Part shown: piece by piece, positions 8,701 to 58,072 of the stretch
Layout: each line of letters begins with the position of its first letter
Position numbering within the stretch: position 1 is the stretch's first letter
Origin: Octopus sinensis
Lineage: Eukaryota
Length of the DNA: 64,000 bases
Assembly (NCBI RefSeq): GCF_006345805.1
Contig: NW_021832529.1
Coordinates: 49,449 to 113,448 of the forward strand
Reading direction: 5' to 3'
Notes under the pieces: generated by a model
The model's input: only the letters and a program-made list of their open reading frames with translations
The model's database searches: none
What the model was told of the DNA's origin: nothing
Made by a program: the position numbers and the translations under genes

Positions 8701-11700
8701 TTTAACGCTGTAAGATTTTACAATGTTCAACTGCAAACAGAACTGGTCAAAATGGCGTCCTTAGGGAGCGAAGATAATACGCGTCTGCTTCAATGAAAGG
8801 CTTTCTGCTGTCTGCTGACTGCTATGTGTCCCTCTGGACGCTCAGTTGGTCAACGTTTTACGCTCCCTTGCCTCCTTGTTAAGGTTCGCATTCCCCTGTC
8901 ATTCAAGTAATGCCACGACAGCAAATCTGTTCTTCCGGTCATCGCGCATGCGCGAGAGTGCCCTTCCCTTCCGCCTTCGCGTATGCGAGAGAGAGCGTTG
9001 CGCGCGCGCACCGTTGTATTGATCACTACAAATCTATTTACCACGCTCTGTATTTAGACACACACACATTTTCCGTTTTGTTGCTAGGAAACCATTAACT
9101 GTTGCAGATAGTGTTCTATTTTTATAAGACATCAGTGCTAGTTGCTGGCCTCTTAAGACGCCCGACCGCTATTTTAAATACACTCAAGCCTGCTTGCTGC
9201 TTAGATAATTTTATCGTCATGTCTGACTATCCTGTGAAAAAAGGACGTGAACCGGGGTACATGAGACACGGTGAGACAATATTATTATTAATAATTATTT
9301 GCACATATAATTTGCCATTAATAGCCGACGAGAATGAATCGTGCTCTCCACTCCGATATTCGAAACTTTGAGTACTATAATGACAACCTTTTACTGTTTG
9401 TTCTAAATTATAATATACTAAGCAGTATCGCCCGGCGTTGCTCGGGTTTGTAAGGGAAATAACTATATAAGCATTTTCAGAGAGTTATAGCCAAAAAATA
9501 GCAAAACAATGCATTAAAAATGGAAAAAAAATTAAGGTAAATTTTTTTTTAAATCGTTGACACACGATAGATATTTTTAGAGAGTTACTTCCCTTATATA
9601 ATAGCGAAAAAATGCATTAAAATGGAAAAATATGATGGTAAATTTGTTTTAGATCGTAGACTCATCGTAGACACGCGCTAAAACACAGTAGGGCTCGATA
9701 TGACTCACGACTATAAGATACCCCGTTTTGGTTACACTGCACCGCAAAATGTGGGAGTAGTTAGGAATCTAAATCGTAGGAGACAGACACACAAGCTTTC
9801 TTTTATATAAAAATTTTCGTCCTAAAAGACTTTGTATGGATTGAATGGTTACCTCTATGGAAATATATACACGCACATTATACATACATGTGTGTATAGA
9901 TGAATATATAATACATTTAAATATCTATATACACTTTTGGGCGAACTTTCTGTTTCTTAGAGATAACTTTATCCCGTCCGATTCGCTCCAAAATTTACAG
10001 GGACATGTAGAATGAGGTGACGATGCTCGTGGGCTACCTTAGAAATCCCTATCTTAAAAGGTGTGGTTGCTAGGGGCCATCTTCCTCACTCATCCTATTT
10101 CCTCCAGTACCCTGTCACTCTCTTCATTTGACAGGCCACTACGGTTATTTAATGTAAAGTCTCCTCAAATCACTCTCTCGCTATTTACTCTCTTCCAAGA
10201 ACATTTTAACTCACACTTATCTCTTAGCTTCCCATAGATTTTACTCATGTATCTATCAGCGTCATAGACAGACAAATATTACATCGCCATCGCATTCTAT
10301 TGTCTACCTGTCAACACACATACAGTGAATTACTTTCACTTTATTCGTAGCACACTGTGTGTGTGCGTATGCGTGTGCTGTAGCCCACACTAAAAGCATT
10401 TGACATACACACCACAATGTGAGTTTTCTCTAAATTTTGCTTAATTGGGGTTGACATTTTAAAAACTGGACTGGCACGACCCGATGCATTCTATTCTTAA
10501 AAATGCTGGGTAAATTGTAATTGAAGAAATCCTATATTGTAGATTTCTATAAGATACAAAGGGAGCAGATAAAATCTGCCTTTTATAATAAGAGATCCCT
10601 TGGTTCTGGCGTGCAAGGCTGAACTTTAACGCTGTAAGATTTTACAATGTTCAACTGCAAACAGAACTGGTCAAAATGGCGTCCTTAGGGAGCGAAGATA
10701 ATACGCGTCTGCTTCAATGAAAGGCTTTCTGCTGTCTGCTGACTGCTATGTGTCCCTCTGGACGCTCAGTTGGTCAACGTTTTACGCTCCCTTGCCTCTT
10801 TGTTAAGGTTCGCCTTCCCCTGCCATTCAACTAATGCCACGACAGCAAATCTGTTCTTCCGGTCATCGCGCATGCGCGAGAGGGCCCTTCCCTTCCGCCT
10901 TCGCGTATGCGCGAGAGAGCGTTGCGCGCGCGCACCGTTGTATTGATCACTACAAATCTATTTACCACGCTCTGTATTTAGACACACACACACATTTTCC
11001 GTTTTGTTGCTAGGAAACCATTAACTGTTGCAGATAGTGTTCTATTTTTATAAGACATCAGTGCTAGTTGCTGGCTCTCTAATAAGACGCCCGACCGCTA
11101 TTTTAAATACACTCAAGCCTGCTTGCTGCTTAGATAATTTTATCTTCATGTCTGATTATCCTGAAAAAAGGACGTGAACCCGGGGTACATGAGACACGGT
11201 GAGACAATATTATTATTAATAATTATTTGCACATAAATTTGCCATTAATAGCCGACCAGAATGTATCGTGGCTCTCCACTCCGATATTCGAAACTTTGAG
11301 TACTATAATGACAACCTTTTACTGTTTGTTCTAAATTATAATATACTAGCAGTATCGCCCGGCGTTGCTCGGGTTTGTAAGGGAAATAACTATATAAGCA
11401 TTTTTAGAGAGTTATAGCCAAAAAATAGCAAAACAATGCATTAAAAATGGAAAAAAAATTAAGGTAAATTTTTTTTTAAATCGTTGACACATCGTAGATA
11501 TTTTTAGAGAGTTGTTTCCCTTATATAATAGGGAAAAAATGCATTAAAATGGAAAAATATGATGGTAAATTTTTTTTAAATCGTAGACTCATCGTAGACG
11601 CGCGCTAATACCCAGTAGGGCTCGATATGACTCACGACTATAAGATACCCGGTTTTGGTTACACTGCACCGCAAAATGTGGGAGTAGTTAGGAATCTAAA

Positions 11701-13285
11701 TCGTAGGAGACAGACACACAACCTTTCTTTTATATATAAATATTTTCGTCCTAAAAGACTTTGTATGGATTGAATGGTTACCTCTATGGAAATATATACA
11801 CGCACATTATACATACATGTGTGTATAGATGAATATATAAATACATTTAAATATCTATATACACTTTTGGGCGAACTTTCTGTTTCTTAGAGATAACTTT
11901 ATCCCGTCCGATTCGCTCCAAAATTTACAGGGACATGTAGAATGAGGTGATGATGCTCGTGGGCTACCTTAGAAATCCCTATCTTAAAAGGTGTGGTTGC
12001 TAGGGGCCATCTTCCTCACTCACCCTATTTCCTCCAGTACCCTGTCACTCCTCTTCATTTGACAGGCCACTACGTTTATTTAATGTAAAGTCTTCCTCAA
12101 ATAACTCTCTCGCTATTTACTCCTATCTTCCAAGAACATTTTCACTCACACTTATCTCTTAGCTTCCCATACATTTTACTCATGTATCTATCAGCGTCAT
12201 AGACAGAAACAAATATTACATCGCCATCGCATTCTATTGTCTACCTGTCAACACACATACAGTGAATTACTTTCACTTTATTCGTAGCACACTGTGTGTG
12301 TGCGTATGCGTGTGCTGTAGCCCACACTAAGAAAAGCATTTGACATACACACCACAATGTGAGTTTTCTCTAAATTTTGCTTAATTGGGGTTGAAATTTT
12401 AAAAACTGGACCTGGCACGACCCGATGCATTCTACTCTTAAAAATGCTAGGTAAATTGTAATTGAAGAAATCCTATATTGTAGATTTCTATAAGATACAA
12501 AGGGAGGCAGATAAAATCTGCCTTTTATAATAAGAGATCCCTTGGTTCTGGGCGTGCAAGGCTGAACTTTAACGCTGTAAGATTTTACAATGTTCAACTG
12601 CAAACAGAACTGGTCAAAATGGCGTCCTTAGGGAGCGAAAATAATACGCGTCTGCTTCAATGAAAGGCTTTCTGCTGTCTGCTGACTGCTATGTGTCCCT
12701 CTGGACGCTCAGTTGGTCAACGTTTTACGCTCCTTTGCCTCTTTGTTAAGGTTCGCCTTCCCCTGCCATTCAACTAATGCCACGACAGCAAATCTGTTCT
12801 TCCGGTCATCGCGCATGCGCGAGAGGGTCTTCCCTTCCGCCTTCGCGTATGCGCGAGAGAGCGTTGCGCGCTCGCACCGTTGTATTGATCACTACAAATC
12901 TATTTACCACGCTCTGTATTTAGACACACACACATTTTCCGTTTTGTTGCTAGGAAACCATTAACTGTTGCAGATAGTGTTCTATTTTTATAAGACATCA
13001 GTGCTAGTTGCTGGCCTCTTAAGACGCCCGACCGCTATTTTAAATACACTCAAGCCTGCTTGCTGCTTAGATAATTTTATCGTCATGTCTGACTATCCTG
13101 TGAAAAAAGGACGTGAACCCGGGGTACATGAGACACGGTGAGACAATATTATTATTAATAATTATTTGCACATATAATTTGCCATTAATAGCCGACGAGA
13201 ATGTATCGTGGCTCTCCACTCCGATATTCGAAACTTTGAGTACTATAATGACAACCTTTTACTGTTTGTTCTAAATTATAATATA

Positions 13286-13681
13286 CTAGCAGTATCGCCC
13301 GGCGTTGCTCGGGTTTGTAAGGGAAATAACTATATAAGCATTTTTAGAGAGTTATAGCCAAAAAATAGCAAAACAATGCATTAAAAATGGAAAAAAAATT
13401 AAGGTAAATTTTTTTTAAATCGTTGACACATCGTAGATATTTTTAGAGAGTTACTTCCCTTATATAATAGCGAAAAAATGCATTAAAATGGAAAAATATG
13501 ATGGTAAATTTTTTTTAAATCGTAGACTCATCGTAGACGCGCGCTAATATCCAGAAGGGCTCGATATGACTCATGACTATAAGATACCCGGTTTTGGTTA
13601 CACTGCACCGCAAAATGTGGGAGTAGTTAGGAATCTAAATCGTAGGAGACAGACACACAACTTCAGTTTTATATATAAAGA
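13286..13681 (-). mobile_element. Short non-autonomous Helitron with both termini intact
   Basis: Minus strand reads A|TCTTTATATATAAAA... at 13681 and hairpin plus CTAG|T at 13286, matching the Helitron A|T insertion rule. Confidence 0.75.
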
Positions 13682-14760: not shown

Positions 14761-15595
14761 CTAGCAGAATTGCCCGGCGTTGCTCGGAGCTGAATTGCTT
14801 GAAAGTACTGTTAATGATTGCACTGAATTATGATGATTATTCAGGCAAATATTGATATAAGTTTACGGACTTAACGATCAAACGTGTGCCATTGCATTGT
14901 TTTGGGGGAACCAAATTTCTGATGAGCATTAGAGGGGCACCAACTTTAAGTTTGAGAAAGTGTGGTGGTAGTCCGGGGTGCTCAAAGGAATTGAGTACCT
15001 CTATTGGATAGTTGATGACGTCCTCTGGGTCAGGAGTTGTATTGATAGACTGATATACATAGACATCCCCAGGAATGAGTGTTAGCATTTCATCATTAAT
15101 ATGGTGAACAGTTTTATTCCTCGGGGCCAGTATAGCCTTTTTGCCAATCCAATCCATATTCTGATAATTAGCTTGTAGATCTGGGAACACTGCATCTGTG
15201 AGATCAGAAGGCGTCTTAAAAATGGTACAAATAGAATCGATGGCAATATTACCATTTTCATCCCCTGGTATTTTGCCTTCGCCAAGTGCAAGGAGGGTGT
15301 GAGGAAATGCTGCTGATGTGAAATTACGTCGCATATGAGCACGCATATTGGTGTGAAGTTTGAGAGTTACTTCCCTTTATTAAAAAAAATATGCATTAAA
15401 ATGGGAAAAAATGAGGGTAAATTATTTGTAAAATCACAGACTCATCGTAGACGCGCGCTAATACCCAGAAGGGCTCGATATGAATCACGACTATAAGATA
15501 CCCGGTTTTGGTTAAACTGCACCGCAAAATGTGGGAGTAGTTAGGAATCTAAATCGTAGGAGACAGACACACAACCTTTCTTTTATATATAAATA
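14761..15595 (-). mobile_element. Helitron deletion derivative retaining a PIF1-like helicase fragment (ORF 14837-15346)
   Basis: KAILAPRNKTVHHIN, YPIEVLNSFEHPGLPPHFLKLKVGAPLMLIRNL and CNGTRLIV are hallmark RepHel helicase motifs; same hairpin plus CTAG 3' end. Confidence 0.92.
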
Positions 15596-18099: not shown

Positions 18100-19100
18100 G
18101 CACTTGCTCAACAAGGGAGCTCAACCCTCCTGCTGAGAGGTAGGTTCATCTGGAACCCCTGACAAGAAGAGATCGAGTTTAGTTTTAAAGAAACCCACAT
18201 CCACACCATGCAGGTCTCTGAGGCATTTAGGAAAAATATTGAAGAGCTGTGGTCCCCTGAAACCCAAGCTGTTGCAGTATCTGGTCCTGTATTTTGATGG
18301 TGATGTTGGGATTTTTTTTTTAGCCCCATGAAGTGGCGCCCTGTTCTGCTGTTGGGGTAACTTTCAATGACAAAATTCGGGACAAGGCCCTCCAGGATTT
18401 TCCAGATGTATATCACTGAATATCGCTCCTGCCTTCGCTCCAGGGAGAAGAGTTTTAATATTTTCATGTCAGGGCCCAGGTCATGCACTGATTTTGACTC
18501 AGGAATTGCAGTTCTTCCTGGGCCAGTGTATCCAGTTTGCATGTTGTTCAGCTTTGTGTGCTGGTAGCGCAGGGCTTGGAACTTTCCTGCATTAAACTGC
18601 ATGTTGTTGTCCTCAGCCAACCTGTATATTGTATCCAACTCCTGTTGCAGATGTGCAATATTTCCAGGGTTTTGTATTGTCTGAGAGAGTTTTGTGTCAT
18701 CTGCATAGCTAGCAAGGGTGGCCATCTTAGCAACTGAGGGCATGTCTGAAAGGGCCACTATGAACAGCAGTGGCCCCAAGACAGTGCCCTGTGGAACAAC
18801 ACTTGTTATTTGTGTTTCCTTGGAGGTGGCTCCATTGGCCATCACTGCCTGCCTTCTAACTTTTAGGAAGTTGTACAGCCATTCTCCAAGTTTTCTGCCT
18901 ATGCCGAGATCATGCAGTTTGTGACAGATCATGCCATGGTTGACTTTATCAGAGGCTTTTGCAAAGTCAAGATATATCACATTCACACTCGAGTCATTTA
19001 GTAGCTGTTTTAACACTGTCATAGTGTTGCAGGAGCTGTGTTAGACAGCTTCTACCTGGTCAAAATCCATGGTGGGTGTCAGTCAGCAAGTCATTTTCTT
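18100..19100 (-). mobile_element. CR1/L2-group LINE reverse transcriptase fragment (degenerate)
   Basis: VIYLDFAKASDKVNH, VPQGTVLGPLLF, YADDTKL, MQFNAGKFQ, SLERRQERY in ORF 18108-19022. Confidence 0.9.
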
Positions 19101-27432: not shown

Positions 27433-29620
27433 TCCTCATCATCATCATCATCATTTAGCGTCCGTTTTCCATGCTAGCATGGGTTGGACGGTTCTACTGG
27501 GGTCTGTGAAGCCGGAAGTCTGCATCAGGCCCAGTCAGATCTGACAGTGTTTCTACGGCTGGATGCCCTTCCTAACGCCAACCACTCCGTGAGTGTAGTA
27601 GGTGCTTTTTACATGCCACCCGCACAGGTGCCAGACGGAGCTGGCAAACGGCCACGAACGGATGGTGCTTTTACGTGCCACTGGCACAGGGGCCGGGCGA
27701 GGCTGGCAATGGACATGAGCGGATGGTGCTTTTTACGTGCCACCGGCACGGGGGCCAGGCGAGGCTGGCAGCAGACACGAACGGAAGGTGCTTTTATGTG
27801 CCACCGGCACGGAGGCCAGTTGGGGCGGCGCCGGCAACGGCCACGATCGGATGGTTCGCTTAACCACAGCTGCAACTTCCACTGATGCTGATCGACCTCA
27901 ATTTTGGTTCTGCTTTCTGATATCTGATTTGATTTGGTTTGATTTTCATTTTGATTTTGATTCTGACTGTTCTCATTGGTCTTGCCGGGTCTTCTCACGC
28001 ACAGCATACTTCCAAAGGTCTCGGTTCCTTAGTGAGACCTAAAGTTCGAAGGTCGTGCTTCACCACCTCGTCCCAGGTTTTCCTGGGTCTACCTCTTCCA
28101 CAGGTCCCCTCAACTGCCAGGGTGTGGCACTTTTTCACACCCCTATCTTCATCCATTCTCGCCACATGACCATACCAGCGCAATCGTCTCTCTTGCACAC
28201 AACAACTGATGCTTCTTAGGTCCAACTTTTCTCTCAAGGTACTTACACTCTGTCGATTATGAACACTGACATTACACATCCATCGGAGCATACTAGCTTC
28301 ATTTCTTGCGAGCTTACGCAAATCCTCAGCAGTCACAGCCCATGTTTCACTACCATGTAGCATGGCTGTACGTACACATGCATCATACAGTCTGCCTTTT
28401 ACTCTGAGCGAGAGGCCTTTTGTCACCAGCAGGGGTTAAGAGCTCTATAAACTTTGCCCAGGCTATTCTTGCTCTAGCAGTTACACTTTCAGCACACCCA
28501 CCCCCGCTACTGACTTGGTCACCTAGGTAACGGAAGCTATCAACTACTTCTAGTTTTTCTCCCTGGAACGTGGTAGAAGTTGGTCTCTGCATATTTTCAG
28601 AGTTTATTGCTCCTGAGCATCTGCCACAGATAAAAACTATTTTCCTAGTTAGTCTTCCTTTGACATTACTACATCTCTTATGTGTCCATAGCTTACATTT
28701 AGTGCATCTTATAGAGTTTCTACCTACGCCTTTTCTACAGATCAAGCAGGGCCATCTACCTGAAGGCGTTTGTGATTGGTCTACCTTCCTACATATTAGG
28801 ACTTTGGTTTTGGCTAGGTTGATTCTAAGGCCCTTCGATTCTAAACCTTGCTTCCACACCTGAAACTTCTCCTCCAGTTCTGATAGAGACTCAGCAATTA
28901 GAGCAAGGTCATCAGCATAGAGGAGCTCCCAGGGGCATCCTGTCTTGAATTCCTCCGTTATTGCCTGGAGGACTATGATAAATAGGAGGGGACTGAGGAC
29001 TGAACCTTGGTGGACCCCAACCTCTACCCGGAATTCTTCACTGTACTCGATGCCAACCCTCACCTTGCTAGCAGCATCTCTGTACATGGCTTGTACAGCT
29101 CTCACTAACCATTCATCTATCCCTAGTTTCCTCATTGACCACCAGATAAGAGATCGGGGGACCCTGTCGAAGGCTTTCTCCATATCAACAAAAGCCAGGT
29201 ATTGGGGCTTGTCTTTGGCTAGGTATTTCTCCTGCAGCTGTCTTACCAGGAATATAGCATCAGTAGTATTTTTCCCTGGCACGAACCCAAACTGCATCTC
29301 ATCTAAGCTAACTCTCTCTCTAATTAGTTGGGCTATAACCCTCTCCGTAACCTTCATTACCTGATCCAACAGCTTGATACCCCTGTAGTTATTTGTATCA
29401 AGGGCGTCACCTTTACCTTTGTAACAGTTGACTATTATGCTGCTACACCAGTCATTGGGTATGACTCCTTCGTGTATCACCTGGTTAACTATACGAGTGA
29501 CTAGGCTATAGCCGACACTACCAGATATTTTGAGCATCTCTGCAGTAATTCCTGATGGGCCTGGGGCTTTCCCTGTTTTCATGCTTGTAATTGCCTTAAC
29601 TACTAAGGAACTGTTCCTTT
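27431..29620 (-). mobile_element. 5'-truncated RTE-clade LINE with nearly complete RT domain (one frameshift near 28430)
   Basis: KAPGPSGI, NYRGIKLL, QFGFVPGK.TTDAIF, AFVDMEKAFDRVP, GVHQGSVLSPLLF, LYADDL, FRYLG, LRWYGHVARM; same 3' UTR and (ATG)n tail as 20394. Confidence 0.95.
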
Positions 29621-29846
29621 CTAATAGATTTTTTCCTCTTATCTGCATGATAAGAGGAAAAAATCTATCAGAAAGGAACTCTAATCTCTCTTTAAAAAAT
29701 ATATTTTGATAAGCATAACAAATGCGCAACCGGAAAAAAGAACTTCACCTAATTAAATTACTTAAATTACTTAAATTATTTTGTCAGCATTTTCTTCATT
29801 TCCTTTTTTATATATCACAACTCGTGTTCCACTTCTCCTTTTTTAA

Positions 29847-35544: not shown

Positions 35545-37462
35545 TATATATATATATATATAATATTGTTGACATCATAAGAATTTATAAAGTTTCTAGA
35601 TAACATGGAATAACTCTTTTTAGGAATTGGTTCTTGAAGTACACCTAAAACTATAAGTAATATCATATAAATATTGGGTTGAAAAACCCTTTTTTGATAG
35701 GAAAAATCAAAGGCTGCCCCTATGAATCGAACCCACATCTCCTGTAGACATGACAAGCATTCTACTGTTGTATGAAAACAATCCTTCGAATTTTTTTATC
35801 CATTTTAGAAACTGTATTCTCACCAGTGTCAATTGTATGCTTGTGTGGGTTGGATGGGTTAGCCAACTCTGAGTCAGTTCTTATTTATGTCCTCTTAGAC
35901 AAATCAGAATACCATGTCTCTCACTTGTATATTACATTTTTGGCTTGTTTTCTACAGTTGCAGACATTGCAGTAATGATTTCCATCATTTGGGAGTAGAT
36001 TAGACCCAGCTATACCCTGTTTTTTTTTTTTTCCTTCGGGAAGCCTTCTTATCTCCCTCAATACTGCACACCCTCAATTTAGGGGTCTTGTCTTGTGAGT
36101 TACCTAGAAACTTCACTGTCAGTGCTGCATGAAAGCACCCTGTACACACTGTAAAGTGGCTGGTATTAGAAAGGGTATCAAGCTGTAAAAATCATGCTAA
36201 AGCAGACATTTGAGTTTGGCATAGTCTTCTGGCATATCTACTTCTGTCAAACTGTCCAACCCCTGCCAGCATGGGATATGGATGTTAAATGATGATGGAG
36301 AGAAAAATTTCATTTCAAATCACAAGTGTTAAACACATTGCCAAATTTCTTTTAGTAATATGTTAGATTATTTATATATATATATATATGTGTGTGTGTA
36401 TAATGTAAAGCAGATTGTATGATGCTTGTGTATGAACGGTTGTACTTCATTGTAGTGGGACAGGGACTCTAAATGCAGAAGACATGCATAAACTCGAGAG
36501 TAATGAAGCTAGTATGTTGTAATGCACATGTAACATAAATGTGCATGTACAATAAAGTGTAATAGAGATAAAGAAGTGTCAATCATTTAAAGTTGATGGC
36601 AAATATGGAAGAAGACATGGGATGAAGTAGTGAGGACTGATTACAAGATGTTAGGCTTCACAGACTGAGATGTCTGGTTTTATGAGGTTCTTGAGAAGAC
36701 CCACCCACCTCAGCAAAACTGAATTCTAGAAGTACTGTGTTACACCCATATGTAACATTAAAAAGCTTTTCACACACCTTACCCTAATAAACGAAACTAC
36801 ATCTCCCCTTCGCCTCTTCCTCACTCCTGCAGCCCAGTTCTGTCCTCACTGCCCCACCCACTGTATCATTGTGATCCTGTTTCCCTCCACCCAACCACTC
36901 TGTATAACCAAGGTTTCACTAGATGCTGCATTCCACCCTCCCCGCTTTGCATTCTCATGAACTCTCTACTCATGCACCCTTAGCAATGCTCTACCATCGA
37001 ATTTGTATTCTCATCTCTATACCTTAAGAGTATCTCCTGGCATATCACCACCATCTCTCTCACTCTCGTTCTCTTCCACTCTTGCTTTCCCTCATTCTCA
37101 ATTACTCTCTCTATCTCTCTCTCTCCAACAATGGTAACCATATATCTCTTCTACAGCAAGACACCTGCTTCTGACCCTCTTTTATACTCTAATCCCTCAT
37201 CACCAGGCACAAAGCGACCTCCTTCAATACCATCCCACCTCTCAGAGGACTTTTGTCTTGCAAGTTACTTGGTAACCTCACTGGTGTTGGTGCCACATAA
37301 AAAGCATTCAGTCCACATTGTAAAGTGGTTGGCATTAGGAAGAGCATCCTGCTGTAAAAGCCATATGCAAAGTAGACCTTACCAGTGCTGGTGCCATGTG
37401 AAAAGCATTCAGTTCACATTATAAAGTGATTGGCATTAGGAAAGGCATCCAGCTGTAAAAAC

Positions 37463-46435: not shown

Positions 46436-46536
46436 GACTGAATGTCAAGAACAGATAAAAGGTTTCTATGGCGCCAAGTTTAAGAAGTTCAGTACAGAAG
46501 AGGAAGCTCTGGCTTTTGCAGAAATTCCGGCATCAG
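46436..46536 (+). CDS. RNASEH1-like: RNase H1-like exon: hybrid-binding (Cauli_VI-type) domain, C-terminal half
   Basis: ttcttctttttcag| acceptor, |gtgaat donor; W.EC..Q+.GF.GAKFKKF.T.EEA.AF motif. Confidence 0.92.
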
Positions 46537-49500
46537 GTGAATAGAATTTTAGTGCTGTTTGGTATAATCAGTAGAGTGTTGAATGAATATCTTGTGGTAT
46601 TTAGCTCAGTTTTTTATGTTCTGAGTTCAAATCCTAGTTAGGTCAAATTAACTTTCATCCTTCTGGGGCTCAATAATGGTCCAGTACTGAGATTGATATA
46701 GTCAGCTGTTCTCTCATTGTGACTTTGTGTCTGTATCAAAAAATAATTATTGTGCAGGTTTGGTTGTGTTGTGAAGAAGCTTGCTTTGCAATCATATGAT
46801 TTCAGGTTCAGTCCTACAATGCTTGCATTTTGGGCAAGTGTCTTATACTATAGTCCAGGCTGACCAATACCTTGTGAGTGAATTTGGTAAACAGAACATG
46901 GACGATGCCAGCGCCGCCTTGACTGGATTCCGTGCCGGTGGCATGTAAAAAGCACCAATCCAATTGTGGCTGTTGTCAGCCTCACCTGGCACCTGTGCTG
47001 GTGGCACGTAAAAAGCACCCACTACACTCACGGAGTGGTTAGCATTAGGAAGGACATCCAGCTGTAGAAACATTGCCAGATCAGACTGGAGCCTGGTGCA
47101 GCCTTCTGGCTTCCTAGATCCCCGGTTGAACCATCAAACCCATGCTAGCATGGAGAACGGACGTTAAACGATGATGATGATGAAACTGAAGCCCATCACA
47201 CAAAGTGTGTCTGTCTTGTGTTTCTGCTTGACAACCAGAGTTAGTTTGTTTATGTGCCCATAACTTTGTAGTTTGACAAAAGAAACTGATGTAGTAAGTA
47301 CCAGACTTTTAAAAAATTAGTACTGGCTCACTTTGTTCAACTAAATCGTTCAAGGCAGTGCATGGCTGCAATCCAAAAGCTGAAACAAATAAAGATGAAA
47401 GATTGCTGTTGTGGCAGGATTAGTAGTGTCAGACAAAATGCTGTGCAGGTTTTGTTCCATCTCTTTCTATTGTGAGTTTAAATCCCACTATGATAAACTT
47501 TGTCTTTCATTTGTTGAGGGCCAATAAAAACAAAGTTCCAGTTAAGTACTATATTGGGCCACCATTAGTCAAGGTTAACCACATATCTGCTCTCGTGTGT
47601 ATGTTTGGACAAGATTTTTGAAGAAGACTAGCAGATACCTATTCCAGTCACCCCATCAACTTGATGCCCTTGTTATTTGCAACCCTTAAGCAAGGTAATA
47701 TTTTCCCTCATAGCCAGACATGTTTTTCACAGGAGATTAGAGATAAATAGCATTGTTTTAATGATGGAGATGTTCATTTACAATCATCACATCACACACA
47801 CACAAGGAACTTCTTTTAGTTTCCATCTTACAAATTCATTCATAAAGCTTTCTTTGGCCCAGGACTATAGCAGAAGATATTTGGTCTAGGTGCCACTGAA
47901 CCTGAAACCATGTGGATGACTAACAAATTTCTTAAATACACACACACTCTCTCTGTCTCTCAGTGGATATATATTTAATAGTCTTTTCCCATTTTTGCTC
48001 TCCCAAGTAATTAGTGTTTTTTTGTTAATATTATGTAACTAATTTGCTATTTTATTTATATATTAACAGACAAAACTCTCTCCAGTGTAGCAAAATCTAT
48101 TCAACCGATTGTGAAAAAACTCATGTCCAGAGTGAACGAATTCTCTCTTCTCTGTCAGACACTGGTGTCAATGCTGGCTGATTTGGATGACTCAGAAGAA
48201 AGCAAAGAATTTTCAACATTAGCATGTAATGTTGAAAATGATTTGGCTAAGTTGACAACAAGTGTTAAACTGGTAATTGATTCTAAGCTTTTGACAGGAA
48301 CTACTTCATCTGAAGATGCATCAGAATCTCCTGAAAAGAAAAAGAGTGTTCAAAAAGGAGGTTTTACTGGTAATGTATCATGTTTTCATTCTCCTTTTAA
48401 GAGATTGTTAATATTTTATTATTATTTTTTTTAAATGAAAACTTGCAGCTTATTTTGCTTGGTATGATAAAAAGTGTCAGCTTCTCCTAGCCAGCAGGCT
48501 AAAGTGACACTTGTTTACTGATCATGGTTCAAGAACCCTGTGGAGAACTCTTGCAGTTCCAAGCAATGCTGATTTTTACAGGTGTTCTATTTTTACATTT
48601 GTACCAATCTTCTTGAGCTGTATTGGTATTTGATAACTGCTGATTCTTCCACCTGCACCAATCACTATTTGTATCATGTCCACTCTCTCCATTGCCCATA
48701 ACCTGTGTATTTCCCACTTCAATTCATCATAGTTGTTCACTTTTTCTTTTTCTTTCTCTTCGATCCTGTTATCACCAGACATGCTTGTCAATTATCAGGC
48801 ATATTTTATTTTATTTTCTGTTCACCACAACAATGTTAGGTTTCCATTGTCTAATCTGATGATCACACTGAATCATTGTATTTCACAGGGTTTTGCAATC
48901 TTCATTCGCAGTAATTCCCTCTGAAATTTGGTCATACCATGTCTGATCTTTCTAGGCCATAATTTCCACAAATCTCCAATGGATCATTCTTGCCTCATTG
49001 TCTTGTCGTCTTTGTATTTACAGTGTGCTGATTTTGGTTATTCACTAACAATGCACACTGTTTCACTCCTCTCACCATTCATTTGGCATTTGTCACTCTT
49101 AGTTGTGCTATCAATTTTGCACTTTAAATAGTTTGTCCTCAATGCTTGTTCTTGTGCTGTGCATATAAGTGCTTCTGTGTCTGTCTTGGAGCTCATATCT
49201 CTTGCAAACTGACTGTACTTTTTTTTTTGTGTTCTTTTCTTCTTTAGATTTCTCTTTCTTAACACAATTATCAATTTTGATGATTTTGGACTTCTTCACA
49301 TGTATCAGCAATGGTTCGGTGGCATTTTTTACATATCATCCTAAGCTGCTTTTCTCTGCTTCAACACAATCCCAGCAACTGATCAAATCCTTCCCATCCT
49401 TTCTTCTGGACAAGTACAACCTATATGTATCACTCTTGGAATAAATTGCTCCATGCACTGTCAATAGTTTCCATGACTTCATAATCATACTCATCAGTCA

Positions 49501-51920
49501 ATAGTTTCTGTGTCTTTGAATCCATACTCATCATCATCATCATCATTATTATTATTGCAATCCCTACCAAGATCTACTTTGCCATTCACCTCTCCATGGT
49601 TAATAAAATAATGTACTTGTCAGTTACAAGGCAGGTTTTGTGCCTATACTAGAAACAATTATTATTATTAGGGATTGGTAGAATCAGTAGAGCATCAAGA
49701 AAATTTCTCACATGTGTTTGCTCTGGCTCTTTATGTCCTGAGTTCAAATTCTGCCAATGCCAACTTTGTCTTTCATCCTTTCAGAGTTGACCTTGAACTC
49801 ACCAATCAAGTAAGTTTAAGGTCAATGGTTTTGACTAACCTGCTCCCCTCAAAAATGTTGGCCTTGTGCCAAAATTAAAATCATTGGTATAGTCTCTCAC
49901 CAACGCTTCTCAGCCTCTGGGTCACAAACATGCTATTCCTTCACTCTGCCTTTTCTACCACTGATGCTGTGGTTTCTGCTCTTTGGAGCTGGCTGGTCTC
50001 AAGCCAATTTCTCTCATCTCTATCTTACTCTCCTCTGCCATATTCTGTCTAACTACTATGCCCAAGCCTACTTCACCAGGACATCAGTCTTTTGAAATCT
50101 ACTTGCTACTCTTCTTTTCCTGAAGTTGTATATAAACATAAACCACATTGATCTCATTGGTTTTGGAAGATTTGTCAGATATTCGTAGAGCCCTTCCTCA
50201 CAGTAAAATTGATAAAAAAGAAACAGCTTAACAATTACATTCACTCATTTGTCTCACCCTAAATATTCTCCCTAGAGATTACACTCTCCATAATTTCTAG
50301 CCAGTTCATAGATGATTTATATAAAGAGCCAGGCAACAATATATTTTTTATAATTTCTATAAAGAGCCAAGCTGCAATATATTTTTATATATAATTTATG
50401 CAAATTTTTTATTTACAGGGAAAAAATTGGCTGATGATGATAAAGATGTTTTCATTGCTGGCAGCTGTCTCAACAATGGTAAACCTGATGCCTCAGCTGG
50501 ACTTGGTGTCTACTGGGGAGAAAGAGAAAAGTAAGTTTTTTGTTGTTGTTTTGTTTCTTGTTAGCGCTTGACTAATAGTCACATAACAACATGGGATGGA
50601 TGGGGATAGAGCTAGAAATATAGAATGTGGTCCCCCATTTCTATTTATTCTTTGGGAACAGAAGGATTATTGTGCCTTTATAGATTTGAATTGTTTCAAT
50701 ATATCGCTTAGTAATGTTTCTATAAGCCATAACCTATCTGTCTTTTGTATATTTAGGACTACTTTATATAGTTTATCTTTTATGTAAAACAGTAAGGCTG
50801 TGATATGATGGGAAGAAACTTAGCAGATTTTCCTAGGAGATTGAGTGGGTAGAAACAACAAGGATGAGGGGGAATAATTTCTTTGGCATCAAGGAGGAAT
50901 TGCAAGTGAAAAAGCATCTGTTGGGGTACATCTGTGTTGAGGAAAATAAGGAGTCTCCGATTTTACAAATTTATAGTTATGTCACATTAAATTACTCTTT
51001 TGGACTTAAGGGTTGAACTTAGTTTTATATGGGGTTTTTTTAGGTTACATCAGTGGCTGGTTTCAAATTTCCCCCTCAGGTAATGTGTGGTCCATCCATC
51101 ACATATAGATTCCTTTGTTTGCTCAGTTGAAGATTTTGTCAGTGTCAGGAACAACATTGCCTGGACTGAGTTGCAGTATGGTGGTCATATTAAGATAATG
51201 GCACCTAATTTACTCCTTTGATTCATGTATATCTTTGTCATAATAAATATCCCTCACCCCTCATACTCTCCATCACAAATTAACTGGTAAGTCTTTACTT
51301 TATGTATTGAAGTTTGTTAAAATGTTGGTTTGTATATTGATAGGCGTTTCAGGGTGTGAACATTGTATATACTCTTTTTGTGTATGAATGTGTGTATATA
51401 GTGTGTGTAAATGTGTATATTTGTATGTCTGTAAATGTGTATCAGTCGTATCATTTTTGTGAAACCTGTCTTCCAGTTCGCTTTACTCACCCCTCTCTGC
51501 ATGTATATTTGTATGAACACAGATTGGCGGGGAGGCCTAGTAGTTAGTGTTGAACTTGTGAATGTGAGATCATTTCCTGGACTGGGCTGCTTGTTGTGTT
51601 CTTGAGTAAAACATTTTGTCTCACGTTGCTCTGCAATCACTTTGACATCTGATGTATGACACATCATCCATCTGTACAAACAGTGTCAATTTGATGGAGG
51701 GAGTGACCTAATGTGCAGTACAAACTTTTGATCTCTATAAGCATCATCTGTGCAGGTGTTTCATTGAGAGTCCATGTATGTACAGACACACATATATTTC
51801 TCAGCACTATTTTTAACATAAAAATATGAATCGCTATTCTGTTCACATATCTCTTTCTTTCCCCCTCTCTCTCTCTGTTTGTCTTTCTCTGTATAATGAC
51901 ATGTGTATACACATTCACAC

Positions 51921-51980
<60 letters not shown>

Positions 51981-54900
51981 GTATGAATATGACACAATAT
52001 TATCTATCTGTCTGTATACATATGTATGTTTATACAGAAACTCATTTATCAACAAAATCATTAAAGATATTTAGTCAATTGGAGATATGACGATAGAAAG
52101 CATGAAATGTTTTATTTTCAAAAGCATTAGCTTTATTTAACTAAATGTTTCTAACAATCACATAGAGAAATTTGTGTTTATCTGTGTACATACATTCACA
52201 CATACTGAGAAAGAGTTACACAATGAATACAGTTATATTCATAAGAATGTGTATGTGTGTAGTGTATCATTGTATAGGGAATGAAAGACTTGACAGACTG
52301 AAAGAATGGAGATTCTTATTTTTTTCCTTCCAATATTGCAATAAGCTACTTCTTCTAAAAGATCAGTCTGTCTGTCTATCTACTTACCAGCTATCTACTT
52401 ATCACAATTTTTTTACTTTGAATGTGCACGATGGTGTATAGTGTGTGTGTGTGTATGATGATATATGTCGGATTGTGTGTATGTCTGTAGGTGAGTATAT
52501 ATGATGGTGTATGTTGCTTTGTGTATGTATATGATTGTATTTGAAGATGTATGTTGGTTTATTGCTTCATATGATGAAAAGCAGTGTAATTTTTATTAGT
52601 CAGCAGAATTACTAAGTCTAGCATGCTCTGTTTTTACAGGAACACAAGTGAAAGACTTGGTGGCAAACAAACAAACAATCGCGCTGTATTATATGTAAGC
52701 TATTCTATTTAAGTTTTCAAGTGAAAATACTGAGAGAATTATTTGTTGGGAAGCTCCTCATTAATTGACACCTTGTGTGTGGAGTGGGGGTGACTTCATC
52801 TGAAGGCACAAAAACTCTTCCCCCTTCTTGCTATTGTAACTTCAACCTTTATATTTAAGCATCTAGAGATGTTTTTTTGTTTTTGTTTAGTCTTTTTCTA
52901 AAATGAAATTATTTTGTTTGCAGGCTGCCATTAGAGCTGTTGAACAAGCAAAGGCCAAAAATATTTCAAACCTTACTATCAACACTAGTAGTGAGTTCAT
53001 AATGAACAGTAAGTTATGTTTGTTTCTCCTATGAATCAACTAATCCTTAACCTATTTAGTGTTTGTGGATGTTATTCCCTAACTTCTTTCATTTGGAACC
53101 CAAGTATTTTACTTCTATCAGTGAATGTCCAGAGGATCTCTTAGTGTTGTGTGTGACTGCATCCTATTGCAAAATTACTATATGTTAAGGTTGAAGAAGA
53201 AAATTGTGCATATTATTTTAGCACCAGATCGATGCTGATTGAACAAAGCAGACTATCCTGTTTTGTTTTGTTTTTTTATTTCTTAAATGTATCTAGAACT
53301 ACATTTATCCAATGTGTCTATCCATTTTTAAGATGGTAGGGAGTGATTTGAGGGAGATCAGATTGCTATTTCTAGCATGTTAAGTAATTATAGAGCCTCC
53401 CTCATTGGCCTGGGGATTAGGTATTTCCAGAATACCTCTTTTACAATATTCACCTTTAGCAGCAGGGCTTTTTACATGTAGTCTTCCAGGAACAAATTGG
53501 CAGGACTTACTACAGATGTTTATATTGTTTATTGGTCAGCTTCATTGTAGCAAATAACAGCTGGAGCTACACTTATCTTTGCTCTTCACAAAATATTTGT
53601 ACAAGTAAATCTGTTACAGGTAATATTTATGTGGAATACTTTTGTTTTTATTTTTCAGTTTGTTTATCTACTTCTCATTCATCATAATATTGTTATTTCT
53701 GTTTGTATAGCTGTGCATGGGGAGACTCATTGAACCAAGTGACACCATAGTCACGACCATTGCCAGTGTCATGTGAATGGCACCTGTGAAATCGTAGTCA
53801 TGGCTGTTACTGGTGTCATGTAAAAGGTGCCCATGCCAGTGGCACATAAAAAAGCACCCATTACACTTTCGGAGTGGTTGGTATTAGAAAGGGCATCCAC
53901 CTGTAAAAACCATGCCAAATCAGACTGGAATCTGGTGCAGCTTTCCAGCATGCTACTTCCAGTCAAACCATCGAACCCATGCCAGCATGGTAAACAGACA
54001 TTAAATGATGATGATAATGATGATAGCCACACCCACATCTCTCATGTCACAGGTGTTATTTTATTAACCATACATATCTTGGAACTATTGGGTCATGCCA
54101 TAAATAATGTGGTTTTTTGTACTTCTTTCATTTTTCAAAATTAAGATAAACAAAATTCTTTTCCAGTCTAAAATATACTCTCCTTCATTTTCTACAATGC
54201 TCTTCCATATATCTGGTACACTTGCCCCTCTTCCAAAATTCACTTGTCTGTGACGAAAAATACTCCTCCAGTACAGTTCTGACCTCATCTGCAGAATTCC
54301 TATTTTTTAGCCCAAATAATTTTGAAGACTGCAGAATAAATGATAATCAGATGGGGCAATGTCCGGTGAATATGGTTTCCCATTCAAACTGCTCAAGCCT
54401 TTGGAATGTCATCCTTGCTATATGTGGCTGAGCATTATTCTGATGGAAGAACACCTTTCGTCTTGAAACCAAAAATAGTTGTTTTTCTTTTAGTGCTGAC
54501 TTAAGTTGCTCAAGCTGCTCACAGTAGATCTCCTTTGTTACTGTTTGGTTTGGGTTTAAAAGTTCAATGTGGACTAAACCTTTCATATCCCACCATACAG
54601 ATAACAACACATTATGTGGTGCCAGTGTTTCTCCTTTTCCTACCCACTGTCTTCAGTGCTTGACATGTTTATAGAGAACCCATTTCTTGTCACCAGTCAC
54701 TACTTGGTCCAAAAAAGTTCATTTGTGAGATGTAACAGCAAAGAAGAACACCCATTCACTCTCTGCGCGCAATTAGACTCAGGAAGTTTGTGGGGGACCC
54801 ATTGACCCAATTTGCTGACTTTTCTAATGGCACACAGGTGTTGATGAATGGTTGAATGACCAAATCCAAGTTTCTCTGCTAGTTCCTCAACAGTTACAAT

Positions 54901-55838
54901 GGGATTTTGTTCCACCAGGGTTTGCAGGATGTCCTTGTTGGGCTCTACAGATCTTCCAGAATGAGGCTCGTCTTCTAGGCTGTAGTTTCTGGCTCGGAAT
55001 TTCTGGAACCACTGTTGATACTGGCTTATGCTTATTTCTGAACCCCATATACTGCATTAATATACCTTGCAATTTCTGTTGCTTTGTTGCCTTTATTGAA
55101 CTTATAAAGCATAATATACCGAATATGCTCCTTTGTCATTTCCATAACAGCTTTGACAAAATAACTGTTAAAATTGCACTGTACTCTTCAAAACTTGCAC
55201 TAAGAATAAGCACAAGGTAAAATTAGAAACAAAGTGAGGGTTGACAATAGGAAATACATCTGGCTGTAGAAAATCTGCCTTAACTATTTCAGTCTGATCC
55301 ATGCAAGTATGGAAAAATGGATGTTAAATTATGATGATGGTGGTTTCTCTGGTGTTTGCTGTCATTATTGACTTCCATGATAATTACTTTGTGTATTTGT
55401 GTATCTTAATCATGAGAGAAGTGGGGCCTTAACCTGAGCATCAACACTTCAGAGCTTGCAATAAATTTAAATTAAAAGGAACCAAGAGATTAACACAAAT
55501 ACTTGCAACAGAATAAGTTAGAGGCCATTAGTGACCAGAGGGTAGTGTTACGCTGGGTGGGATTTTAAATGTAACACCAAAAAGTTAGGCCTAAGACAAT
55601 AATGTTAAATCTGTTCCTTCTCTCCCTCACACCAGGTATAACTAAATGGTTGGAGGGTTGGAAAAAGAATAACTGGATGAAATCAAATGGAAAAGAAGTG
55701 ATAAACAAAGAAGAACTGCAGGAATTGGATAAGAAATTGGAGGGAATCAATGTTAAATGGGTAAGTTTAAGCAGGACGAACTGGGAAGCTAAAAGAAAAC
55801 TCTATCATGACATCTAAACCAACTGAAGGATTTTATTC

Positions 55839-55875
<37 letters not shown>

Positions 55876-58072
55876 AAACATGTTTGATTGTGTGCTTTGT
55901 TTTTTTTTTCCATTGTGGTCTAATTAGAAGAGGTTAAGATTACTTATCAAGGTTTGCAAAGATTTTGGTAAGAGATTAGAAAATCTGACTGTAATTTTGG
56001 AGGAGAAAAAATTTTTCAGTCTGTGTGCTTTTCACCTTTCCTACTGATCATCTTGATGATATAGTAGAAGTTGATGATGGTATGAGGGGTTTCTTCCATA
56101 TGTTGCAGACTGTTAGGTTTGGTTGTGTGAGCAGTGTGGAAGGACATATCTAGGAGAATGGTTTCAGTCCCACATTTAACTGTCTGATGAGTCAGAGGTG
56201 AAACATGTGTTGTGAAGGGTCATCAGTGTAGAACTGGTAGAGTGTCAACCAGTGAGTTGAGGTACCAGAGAACTGGCAAGGGTTGTTGTGCTTTGATTAG
56301 CTGTAAGTTGGAGCATTCTGTGAGGTGCAACTCTAAAAATGTTGTTGTTTTAACCCTAATTGAACAGACTTATGATCAAAGGTATTCTAGCCAAGGCCAT
56401 GCATCTTTTCTGAAGTATGTCCTATTCCAAGACAGCAGGGTGTGATTTAAGAGAAATTTGGCTTTTTCTAGCAAGTTGTTACTACTTAGATGCTCTCTCC
56501 TCCCTTTTCTCTGATAATGAAGTAAAAGCTTTGAGGTGAGAAATAGATCAATAATTTTTTAATATTTAATTTTATGGATTTGGGCAGGTGACAACACAAA
56601 TTAGTGCAAAATTTAGGGATGGAAAACTGCTCATCCTCAACAGTAGCTGCATTGGTGTAGGAGGAGTGAGAGAGGAAAGAAATGTGATGAGAATAAGTAC
56701 AAAGAAAGGTGAGGCAAGATGTCATCAGTGTAAAATAATTGGTAGTTGAACTACTGTTGATGTTGGAGAGGTTTGAAGAAAAGTAGTGGCTATAAAGAAA
56801 CTTAGCAGGGAGACTTAGAGCCACAGTAACTGGAAGTCTTTTTGCTTCCACTCTCTCCTCTTCTCATCTGGTTATCAACCAAATAATACTTTTCAGTGTG
56901 TGAAGGTGGAATATAGAATGTAGTCTGAACAACAGATGAACTGGAAATAGATGAGAAATAGCTGGCACAGAAAAGAATAAAATTTGAATGAGGGAGGAGA
57001 AAAGCAAGTATGCATATGTACACCCCTGCCACACACATCCTTAACTCTCTTAAGTTTGTTTCAACTACTGAATGAACTAGCACAAAGAATTACAATGTTC
57101 CAGATGATCTATTCTCATTGACAGATTGTCAAAGAACTCTAGAAGAATTAAATGTCATTTTAATCTCTCATCAAAAATTTGAGTAGATGCCTAGAAAATT
57201 TTTCATGTCTAAAAATGTTAGTAATAACTTTCTATTATTCAAAGAAACAAGAAACTTTTCTTTAATAACCAATGAAAATAGTCATAAACAGTTGTTATTA
57301 TATATTGCCTAGCACTTAGAAGAAAGGGGTTTTAAAGAAAATAGTGTATTTGAATGGTTGTTTTTAATTTAAAAAAACACTATTTTATGAATGAATCAAT
57401 GCTTAAAATTTTAGACATGAATTTGAAACAGAAAAGGCAAGATACCTACTTAACTCTTTTGAGAGAAATATTAGTATAATTTGTAACTTGATTAACCAAG
57501 GAATGGTCAGTACTTAATAACAAACCAGTGGGACTGGTTTATTGTAATTAGAATTATTATTAAAAGAAAGAAAAGTGTTGGCCTTGTGCGAAAATTAGAA
57601 AGAATTATCAATATGAATTGTGTTCATGGCCCATGTAGGCCCTCTAAGAGTGGTTAAGTTGGCTGCTTCAAGTTGATTGCTACAGAAAGAACTAGGGCAG
57701 GAAGGGAATTCCAATGGGATGTTATTCAGGGAAGGGAGGGAGTTGGAAATGATTATTGTAGGCCTGGGAATACAATATGCATGTTTCAAATTGGTACTAA
57801 TAATGTTTAGAGATTTTTAAAATTATTATTTTATTTAATTTTATAGTTTAATGAGAGTTTCTCTAATTTCTATTCTCAGTCTCCGCATAGGAGAATAAAA
57901 ATAGATAGGCTGTGGATAGCCTCCTCCTCTTTACATCAACAAATAAATATAAAAATTATTTTGATTGTATATTATTTCTATTTCCTAGGTCCATGTGGAT
58001 AAATGTTGTGCTGGAAACGAAGCTGCTGACAAATTGGCCAATAAAGGAGCAAAACTTCCTCTACCTGAGTAG
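46436..58072 (+). CDS. RNASEH1-like: Spliced RNase H1-like gene (hybrid-binding domain, long linker, RNase H fold) with catalytic residues substituted; 5'-incomplete. Exons 46436-46536, 48070-48369, 50419-50530, 52640-52694, 52924-53008, 55636-55760, 57989-58072
   Basis: All introns GT-AG with compatible phases (2,1,1,2,0,1,0) and no stops. Spliced protein: (W)TECQEQIKGFYGAKFKKFSTEEEALAFAEIPAS-D-[99-aa linker]-GKKLADDDKDVFIAGSCLNNGKPDASAGLGVYWGEREKNTSERLGGKQTNNRAVLYAAIRAVEQAKAKNISNLTINTSSEFIMNSITKWLEGWKKNNWMKSNGKEVINKEELQELDKKLEGINVKWVHVDKCCAGNEAADKLANKGAKLPLPE*. Confidence 0.93.
48070..48369 (+). CDS. RNASEH1-like: RNase H1-like exon: 300-nt connection/linker exon
   Basis: Open 300 nt between taacag| and |gtaatg with phases 1/1, fitting both neighbouring exons; overlaps ORF 48111-48434. 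Confidence 0.78.
48415..49530 (-). mobile_element. R4/Dong-type (REL endonuclease) non-LTR retrotransposon 3' fragment in intron
   Basis: TEALICTAQEQALRTNY.KCKID...DKC...GE.SETV..IVSEC (CCHC region), GDNRIEEKEKEKVNNYDELKWEI, IVIGA.G, then (TAA)n-like tail near 48415-48430. Confidence 0.8.
50419..50530 (+). CDS. RNASEH1-like: RNase H1-like exon: first strand of RNase H domain (catalytic D replaced by A)
   Basis: atttacag| and |gtaagt; VFIAGSCLNNG...AGLGVYWG versus canonical VYTDGxCxxNG...AGxGVYWG. Confidence 0.93.
52640..52694 (+). CDS. RNASEH1-like: RNase H1-like exon: QTNNRA helix (catalytic E replaced by V)
   Basis: tttttacag| and |gtaagc; RLGGKQTNNRAVLY versus canonical RLPGxQTNxRAEI. 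Confidence 0.93.
52924..53008 (+). CDS. RNASEH1-like: RNase H1-like exon: AA..A+EQA...TDS region (catalytic D replaced by S)
   Basis: tttgtttgcag| and |gtaagt; LTINTSSEFIMN versus canonical LxxxTDSxFxxN. Confidence 0.93.
54086..55220 (-). mobile_element. Degenerate mariner (DD34D-type) transposon in intron
   Basis: GQWVPHKL, LLSVWWDMKG+VH.ELL, FHQNNAQPH motifs; TIR-like tattgggtcatgccataaat at 54086. Confidence 0.85.
55636..55760 (+). CDS. RNASEH1-like: RNase H1-like exon: basic protrusion (W..GWKKN.W...NGK.V.NK)
   Basis: ctccctcacaccag| and |gtaagt; overlaps ORF 55602-55817. Confidence 0.95.
57989..58072 (+). CDS. RNASEH1-like: RNase H1-like last coding exon (HV...GNE.AD.LA..GA, stop TAG)
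   Basis: tttctatttcctag| acceptor; several AATAAA hexamers within ~270 nt downstream. Confidence 0.93.
   Translation, partial: VHVDKCCAGNEAADKLANKGAKLPLPE

Follow-up and report, generated by a model that had tools for sequence, protein, structure and literature searches.

The question raised by the stretch of Octopus sinensis DNA analysed here (64,000 nt, hereafter the window) is whether a ribonuclease H1 (RNase H1) gene whose catalytic residues have been replaced still encodes a working protein and, if so, what that protein would do. RNase H1 is usually single-copy and strongly conserved, and a dead form of it is known chiefly as a tool for mapping R-loops. The window is the terminal 64 kb of the unplaced scaffold VCDQ01002521.1 (113 kb; scaffold positions 49449-113448) and is eukaryotic in character, its DNA containing long introns, microsatellites and pieces of transposons. 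In an earlier note on this DNA, residues that grip the substrate were described as kept and catalytic ones as lost, and this asymmetry was taken as an argument for a binding-only function. The analysis described here indicates that the window copy is probably a young, dead member of an RNase H1 family under positive or diversifying selection; the case for function comes from the pattern of substitution among the copies and not from the retained residues on their own.

The gene was matched by protein search to the O. sinensis RefSeq entry 'ribonuclease H1-like'. It occupies window positions 13085-58072 on the + strand and has eight coding exons, with GT-AG at every intron; the joined coding sequence translates to an exact match to RefSeq isoform X1, XP_036355017.1 (P0058, 304 aa). 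Two Pfam domains were recognised in the product, RNase_H (PF00075; 95.3 bits, cut-off 25.8) and the hybrid-binding domain (PF01693; 56.6 bits). The range considered in the earlier note, 50419-55760, corresponds to exons 4-7. All six of the motifs listed there (FKKF, NNG, KQTNN, W..GWKKN.W, KSNG and VINK) were found on the + strand, FKKF lying outside that range, in exon 2.

Residue correspondences were taken from an HMMER alignment with human RNase H1 (PDB 6vrd and 2qk9) and from a 57-sequence alignment, and human numbering is used throughout. Exon 4 (50419-50530, +) encodes strands beta1-beta3 of the RNase H domain, including the motif FIAGSC, in which D145 is replaced by A (GCT, 50457). In exon 5 (52640-52694, +), the motif RAVLY carries the replacement of E186 by V (GTA, 52686), and in exon 6 (52924-53008, +) the motif INTSSEF carries that of D210 by S (AGT, 52987). 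The coding part of exon 8 (57989-58072, +) encodes VHVDKCCAGNEAADKLANKGAKLPLPE followed by the stop codon; here the flexible-loop histidine H264 is replaced by C (TGT, 58004), two residues are deleted directly after it, and D274 is retained (GAC, 58028). The loss of catalytic residues described in the earlier note was thus borne out by alignment. The DEDD metal-binding tetrad reads A, V, S, D in the window copy and is 98-100% invariant among the 56 canonical homologues in the alignment; the catalytic positions altered here are 95-100% invariant among the same homologues. Relative to the canonical sequence, 31 of 153 sites in the RNase H domain are changed, and the change of four of the five catalytic sites is beyond chance (P = 0.007). 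Two-metal-ion catalysis needs the carboxylates. Because those of D145, E186 and D210 are gone, and because the D210N substitution alone gives a non-cleaving binder, the window protein is, as judged from its residues, almost certainly non-catalytic; with three of four carboxylates and the loop histidine replaced, two-metal-ion cleavage of RNA in RNA:DNA hybrids would be impossible.

Relatives of the gene were sought in other cephalopods. A single intact RNase H1 (P0066) is present in O. bimaculoides; its DEDD tetrad and histidine are complete, and it is encoded by a 39-kb gene adjoining RPS7. One intact RNase H1 protein was also found in Argonauta hians. The RNase H1 region adjoining RPS7 covers 134 kb in O. 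sinensis and 113 kb in O. vulgaris, and more copies lie on unplaced scaffolds; these two species carry several tandem dead RNase H1 copies with introns ~99% identical. RefSeq models at the chromosomal regions join exons of different tandem copies. DNA was compared for four dead copies, namely the window copy (W), L001 (87 kb upstream of W on the same scaffold and strand), L003 (O. sinensis scaffold VCDQ01002559.1) and L002 (O. vulgaris chromosome), and the 134-kb and 113-kb chromosomal regions were seen as protein models only. The four copies align across ~20-28 kb at 96-99% identity, and in all four, exons 2-8 are free of stops and frameshifts and have intact splice sites. Exon variants are shuffled among the copies: W shares exon 4 with L001, exon 5 with L003 and exon 6 with O. 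vulgaris L002 (0 of 85 nt differ). The locus is best read as one member of a young family of tandem RNase H1 duplicates of the O. sinensis/O. vulgaris lineage, a family absent from the single O. bimaculoides locus.

Three further observations were made on these relatives. A 6-nt deletion beside H264 was present in every O. sinensis and O. vulgaris exon 8 seen (proteins P0055, P0057 and P0065). The 'canonical' O. sinensis model has D145, E186 and D210 intact, with H264 = C, D274 = E and a frameshifted tail. In O. bimaculoides L004, a 64-bp piece of intron 4 (37204-37267; VVFTDGCCFHNGKHGASAGLGV) is 98% identical to part of exon 4 and lies ~190 bp downstream of the real exon 4, without splice sites and accompanied by another partial repeat.

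The evidence that carries the argument for function is the divergence of exons relative to introns. The O. sinensis copies differ from one another by 0.7-1.0% in non-coding DNA; the exons diverge by 2-5% overall and by up to 13-15% in single exons. Across the three O. sinensis copies, variable sites number 38 of 461 (8.2%) in the RNase H-domain exons and 5 of 985 (0.5%) in the flanking 100-bp intron segments (p = 8e-15), and the excess ends sharply at the exon edges. Nearly every coding difference alters the protein. Between W and L003, the RNase H domain shows 34 nonsynonymous and 0 synonymous differences, and across the four copies 61 variable sites are nonsynonymous and 2 synonymous, with ~20% synonymous expected (binomial p = 9e-5). 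Nonsynonymous divergence of this domain is ~10 times the intron rate, and for the four copies together it exceeds the intron rate at p = 3e-21. Pairwise ratios of nonsynonymous to synonymous substitution rates (dN/dS) between copies in the RNase H domain, obtained from counting methods on recombining copies rather than from a full codon model, range from 3.1 to infinity. The copies diverge most in exon 6, with 11-13 differences in 85 nt, all nonsynonymous. In comparison with O. bimaculoides, dN for the RNase H domain (0.115-0.14) is again higher than dS (0.085-0.092), and dS matches the intron divergence of ~0.09.

The changes are concentrated around the former active site: within five residues of catalytic positions, as gauged by distance along the sequence, they are enriched with an odds ratio of 2.7 (p = 0.006). 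Nine sites have acquired two different derived residues. Among them are D145, replaced by A in some copies and by Y in others, both reachable from GAT in one step, and D210, which has changed to N and then to S. The linker encoded by exon 3 (48070-48369, +) has a dN/dS of ~1.1-1.8 and in-frame indels, among them deletions of 18 nt and 3 nt in the window copy relative to its sister copies. Function is argued for because dN/dS is far above 1, exons diverge ~10 times as fast as introns, the excess is limited sharply at exon edges and exons 2-8 are intact; repeated selection would have driven the replacement of coding bases, most of all near the old catalytic centre and along the substrate-facing side, at a rate well above that of silent sites or introns. 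The product shows the features of a pseudoenzyme, with fold homology, lost catalytic residues and selection on the coding sequence.

Other processes that could raise exon divergence were considered and rejected. A mutational process of the ADAR or APOBEC kind does not account for the excess, since all 12 change types are present and transitions make up 0.42 of exon changes and 0.69 of intron changes. Gene conversion, whether its template was cDNA or a long-diverged donor, was rejected because only 2 of 63 exon differences are synonymous. An old duplication masked by homogenised introns was rejected because dN exceeds dS in the comparison with O. bimaculoides as well; moreover, 11 nonsynonymous differences scattered through an 85-bp exon could not have escaped the contiguous conversion tracts by which introns would be homogenised.

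The residues that hold the substrate give a less direct answer. In the RNase H domain of the window copy, N151 (in NNG, exon 4, 50472), T181 and N182 (in KQTNN, exon 5, 52665), W221 and W225 (exon 7, 55647), S233 (in KSNG, exon 7, 55680) and N240 (in VINK, exon 7, 55698) are identical to those of human RNase H1, and R179, also in KQTNN, is conservatively replaced by K; exon 7 (55636-55760, +) encodes the basic protrusion. In the hybrid-binding domain, Y29, F58, K59 and K60 are retained, the last three in the FKKF motif (46479) of exon 2 (46436-46536, +), which encodes the second half of that domain. The earlier statement that every gripping residue is identical or conservatively replaced holds for all of the positions it named (N151, T181, N182, W221, W225, S233, N240, K59, K60 and R179) except W43, which is Arg in the annotated product. 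The functional argument built on these residues did not stand. One of the eight listed binding residues is changed, against a background of 20%, and the probability of one change or fewer is 0.50; as the duplicate is very young and 31 of the 153 domain sites are changed, retention of seven of eight is the default expectation. Conserved non-catalytic sites are changed at 3 of 37 positions (all conservative and beside the active site) and less conserved sites at 24 of 111. The sister copies also alter residues of the grip, with T181 replaced by K and N182 by S in L001, S211 and F213 each replaced by N in L001 and L003, Q183 replaced by I in L002 and in chromosomal copy B, and position 179 alternating between R and K among copies. 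Free variation of the grip positions among relatives had been named beforehand as the outcome that would speak against a binding-only function, and such variation is present in part, at T181, N182, Q183, F213, S211 and R179. Given background-level retention and the variation between sister copies, conservation of the binding residues is by itself an unsound argument for function.

With regard to exon 2, RefSeq isoforms X3 and X5 (P0059 and P0002) lack 36 nt of it (46485-46520) coding for KKFSTEEEALAF, which includes K59 and K60; the gap is bounded by TTT direct repeats without GT-AG, and may represent transcripts of another copy or an alignment artefact.

Superposition on the human RNase H1-hybrid complex, a check proposed in the earlier note, gave a close fit. 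The AlphaFold model of the product has a mean predicted local distance difference test score (pLDDT) of 87, with values of 93-98 in the RNase H domain, and this domain superposes on the human hybrid complexes 6vrd, 8swc and 2qk9 with template modelling (TM) scores of 0.91-0.94 and root-mean-square deviations of 1.1-2.2 Å. Because the RNase H domain matches hybrid-bound human RNase H1, the substrate-holding scaffold is predicted to be intact. The RNase H1 domain plan would be retained, with a hybrid-binding domain, a helical linker and an RNase H domain whose fold is confidently predicted. In the linker, two long helices are predicted at residues 50-88 and 94-129, with disorder at 130-148. The helices (P0058 residues 50-129) have a pLDDT of ~66-86 and the segment is conserved among cephalopod RNase H1 proteins; from the model, the linker may be a protein-interaction module.

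The first exon bears on both hybrid binding and the destination of the product. The N-terminal half of the hybrid-binding domain (MSDYPVKKGREPGVHET) comes from the exon 1 chosen by RefSeq (13085-13137, +). This exon lies in a tandem array (2798-13679, +), detected by self-BLAST, that comprises ~5.7 units of 1,936 bp, each with one copy of coding exon 1 and the DNA upstream of it; the longest period covered by Tandem Repeats Finder (500) is shorter than the unit. The units are 97-100% identical to one another, and the segment is single-copy in O. vulgaris L002 and in O. bimaculoides L004. Exon-1 ATGs were located by tblastn and sequence inspection at 3411, 5349, 7283, 9219, about 11149 and 13085. 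The array may provide alternative first exons or promoters, or may be an assembly expansion. A Trp at position 43 had been implied in the earlier note from the xx|G codon at the junction with exon 2; the annotated exon 1, however, ends CG|G and encodes Arg, as do the copies at 5349 and 11161 (the one with its ATG at about 11149), and only one of the six copies, at 7283, would supply Trp (TG|G). A single base is missing from the copies at 3411 and 9219, and two bases are missing from the coding part of the copy at 11161. The RefSeq exon 1 further carries F28->D, A30->P and Y40->H, with Y29 unchanged. Relative to the O. vulgaris copy, 8 of 53 nt differ in the coding part of exon 1, all nonsynonymous, and 4 of 93 nt differ just upstream. 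That upstream segment corresponds to the mitochondrial presequence. Where O. vulgaris and O. bimaculoides have its ATG, every one of the six exon-1 copies has AAG (e.g. 12992-12994, 93 nt upstream of the exon-1 ATG), and the rest of the presequence is nearly intact, the start-codon change being one of the four differences. Because the presequence ATG has become AAG, a mitochondrial isoform cannot be made from the window copy, and the product would be nuclear or cytoplasmic.

Hybrid binding without cleavage is a plausible leading idea for the window copy and the most economical function, because this copy still has the DNA channel and the greater part of the phosphate pocket. The product would most likely act by binding nucleic acid, without cutting it, in the substrate groove inherited from RNase H1; a dead copy of this sort could shield or occupy RNA:DNA hybrids, or be a competitor of the active enzyme. 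The arms-race-like pattern of substitution hints at genetic conflict, perhaps with retroelements or viruses. A wider proposal is that, in the O. vulgaris group, a housekeeping RNase H1 has given rise to multi-copy, fast-diversifying, non-cleaving binders of hybrids or related structures that serve genetic conflict, either by clamping reverse-transcription intermediates of retroelements or viruses or by acting as decoys for an inhibitor of RNase H1. This full scenario is offered as speculation and is judged unlikely; if it is true, nature would have its own equivalent of the dead RNase H1 probe used in the laboratory, and the family would represent a new kind of innate nucleic-acid 'reader'.

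Several observations weigh against a selected, hybrid-binding family. Strong hybrid binding by the annotated product is doubtful on its residues, because its hybrid-binding domain carries W43->R, A30->P and F28->D and because, in the human domain, W43A abolishes heteroduplex binding (K59A/K60A reduce it about tenfold; PMC6846478). The sister copies alter grip residues, as described above, and the depletion of changes at conserved non-catalytic sites reaches p = 0.085 only. Of the six exon-1 copies, two have lost their frame through a 1-bp deletion and another carries an indel; the chromosomal sister models finish in a frameshifted tail; L001 and L003 are possibly alleles and not separate loci. 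Finally, Logan transcript-derived proteins were sought in the protein clusters of the dead copies and none was found.

The alternative that best survives these points is that the window copy is functional and dead as proposed but that its groove has been remodelled for another ligand (a protein, double-stranded RNA or another nucleic-acid structure), hybrid binding being no longer its job. The focus of positive selection on the former active site and substrate face would fit this, as would the differences between copies at the substrate-contact positions T181, N182, Q183, M212 and F213 and the absence of W43 from the annotated transcript; a nucleic acid, moreover, cannot 'escape', so that an arms-race pattern suits a protein partner better. 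On the other side stand the retention by the window copy of N151, T181, N182, W221, W225, S233, N240, K59 and K60 and a predicted fold that superposes on the hybrid-bound human domain at ~1.1-2.2 Å. As an account of the whole locus this explanation is judged unlikely, and yet the damaged hybrid-binding domain and the variable groove of the sister copies may leave real room for a changed ligand.

Decay offers a second alternative, in which the window copy is a pseudogene or a nascent one that lost its catalytic residues first by chance and is otherwise too young to have broken. The duplicates are indeed very young (intron divergence ~1%), and the frameshifted copies and W43->R in the exon-1 array, the frameshifted C-termini of the chromosomal sister models, a more degenerate O. 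vulgaris X3 model and the lack of a transcript-derived protein in the Logan-based clusters could all be read this way. Neutral drift, however, predicts equal divergence of exons and introns and a dN/dS of ~1, and neither was seen; nonsynonymous divergence of the RNase H domain at ~10 times that of introns, with 61 nonsynonymous and 2 synonymous variable sites, is confined to exons, and exons 2-8 are free of stops and frameshifts in four copies. The broken frame or splice sites of a pseudogene are not found in the gene, only some redundant exon-1 copies being frameshifted. This pattern of selection disfavours a neutral pseudogene, and decay is considered quite improbable.

An assembly or annotation artefact, whereby collapsed haplotypes, chimeric scaffolds or sequencing errors give a single real gene the appearance of several, could be suspected from the position of the window on an unplaced 113-kb scaffold, from the difference of only 0.7% between the non-coding DNA of L001 and L003, which might be allelic, and from the RefSeq chromosomal models that fuse exons of separate copies. 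W and L001, however, lie on one scaffold 87 kb apart, O. vulgaris L002, which comes from another species and an independent assembly, has an exon 6 identical to that of W over 85 nt, and errors would not spare synonymous sites and introns. Because exon variants recur in the assembly of the second species and the differences avoid silent sites, an artefact is very unlikely. That the protein is still a nuclease, acting through the retained D274 and newly gained residues such as the Cys and Ser near the site, is hardly credible when three of its four metal-binding carboxylates are A, V and S and the single D210N substitution is the standard non-cleaving form of human RNase H1 (PMC6868509).

Mobile elements account for further features of the window. 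A decayed mariner-like transposase, its frame split over three frames, lies on the - strand of intron 6 at ~54050-55200; a segment of ~890 bp in the same intron (54331-55223) has no counterpart in O. vulgaris L002 and may be an insertion. Upstream of the gene and in intron 1, transposon fragments were found at 1301-1966 (+), 14837-15346 (-), 18108-19022 (-) and 28383-29729 (-); these four include a long terminal repeat (LTR)-type reverse transcriptase with linked RNase H, two more reverse-transcriptase open reading frames and a piece of a Helitron-like Pif1 helicase 2B domain.

A young, dead RNase H1 family member under selection can be set beside several known systems, the closest being the eukaryotic RNase H1 proteins from which it descends (human RNASEH1; O. 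bimaculoides P0066). Domain order is shared with these, identity to the human catalytic domain is 46%, exon structure is shared with the O. bimaculoides gene, the ancestral chromosomal locus adjoins RPS7, and the DNA-channel and phosphate-pocket residues are kept. The window copy differs in the replacement of D145, E186, D210 and H264, the loss of the mitochondrial start and the Arg at position 43, and it belongs to a multi-copy tandem family with dN/dS far above 1 in place of purifying selection. Because the catalytic features of the family fail, classification as an RNase H1 enzyme (Enzyme Commission number EC 3.1.26.4) would be inappropriate, although the gene is RNase H1 by descent. C. elegans offers an animal precedent for more than one RNase H1-type gene per genome, since multiple RNase H1-related genes are said to have been described there by Arudchandran et al. 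in 2002; we know of no report of tandem dead RNase H1 copies under positive selection in that species. A literature search found no paper on octopus RNase H1 duplicates or on naturally occurring, positively selected paralogues of RNase H1 that are catalytically dead.

Engineered dead RNase H1 probes share with the window copy an RNase H1 that is unable to cut, a property predicted here from sequence. In R-ChIP, human RNase H1 D210N binds hybrids stably without cutting them, and the W43A/K59A/K60A/D210N form ('WKKD') is the standard non-binding control (PMC6868509). The window copy is natural and has four active-site changes rather than one, and it falls between the D210N probe and the WKKD control in that W43, which the control has mutated together with K59 and K60, is altered in its annotated hybrid-binding domain. 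If the reading of a selected, dead family is correct, this lineage-specific family would show that the hybrid-recognition scaffold can be recruited to a non-enzymatic job, and the dead copies would supply natural variants of the substrate groove with which the determinants of hybrid recognition could be probed.

The OAS family of rapidly evolving nucleic-acid sensors has undergone tandem duplication and includes the inactive paralogues OASL and Oas1b, dead copies that still bind. It resembles the octopus family as a group of nucleic-acid-binding enzymes whose contact surfaces for nucleic acids or antagonists have repeatedly come under positive selection, and positive selection has been described for cGAS and OAS1 (PMC4420275). 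Its fold and chemistry are different, and an immune role for the octopus copies would be conjectural. Exons that outpace introns in divergence are known from snake venom phospholipase A2 and from conotoxins. The likeness to these venom genes is in the near-identical introns of paralogues, the divergent exons and the substitutions that are nearly all nonsynonymous; the difference is that the octopus protein is intracellular, derives from a housekeeping enzyme and has no signal peptide. Beyond venom and immune genes, this locus is an unusually clear example of exons that evolve much faster than introns, and it lies in a cephalopod genome rich in active retroelements.

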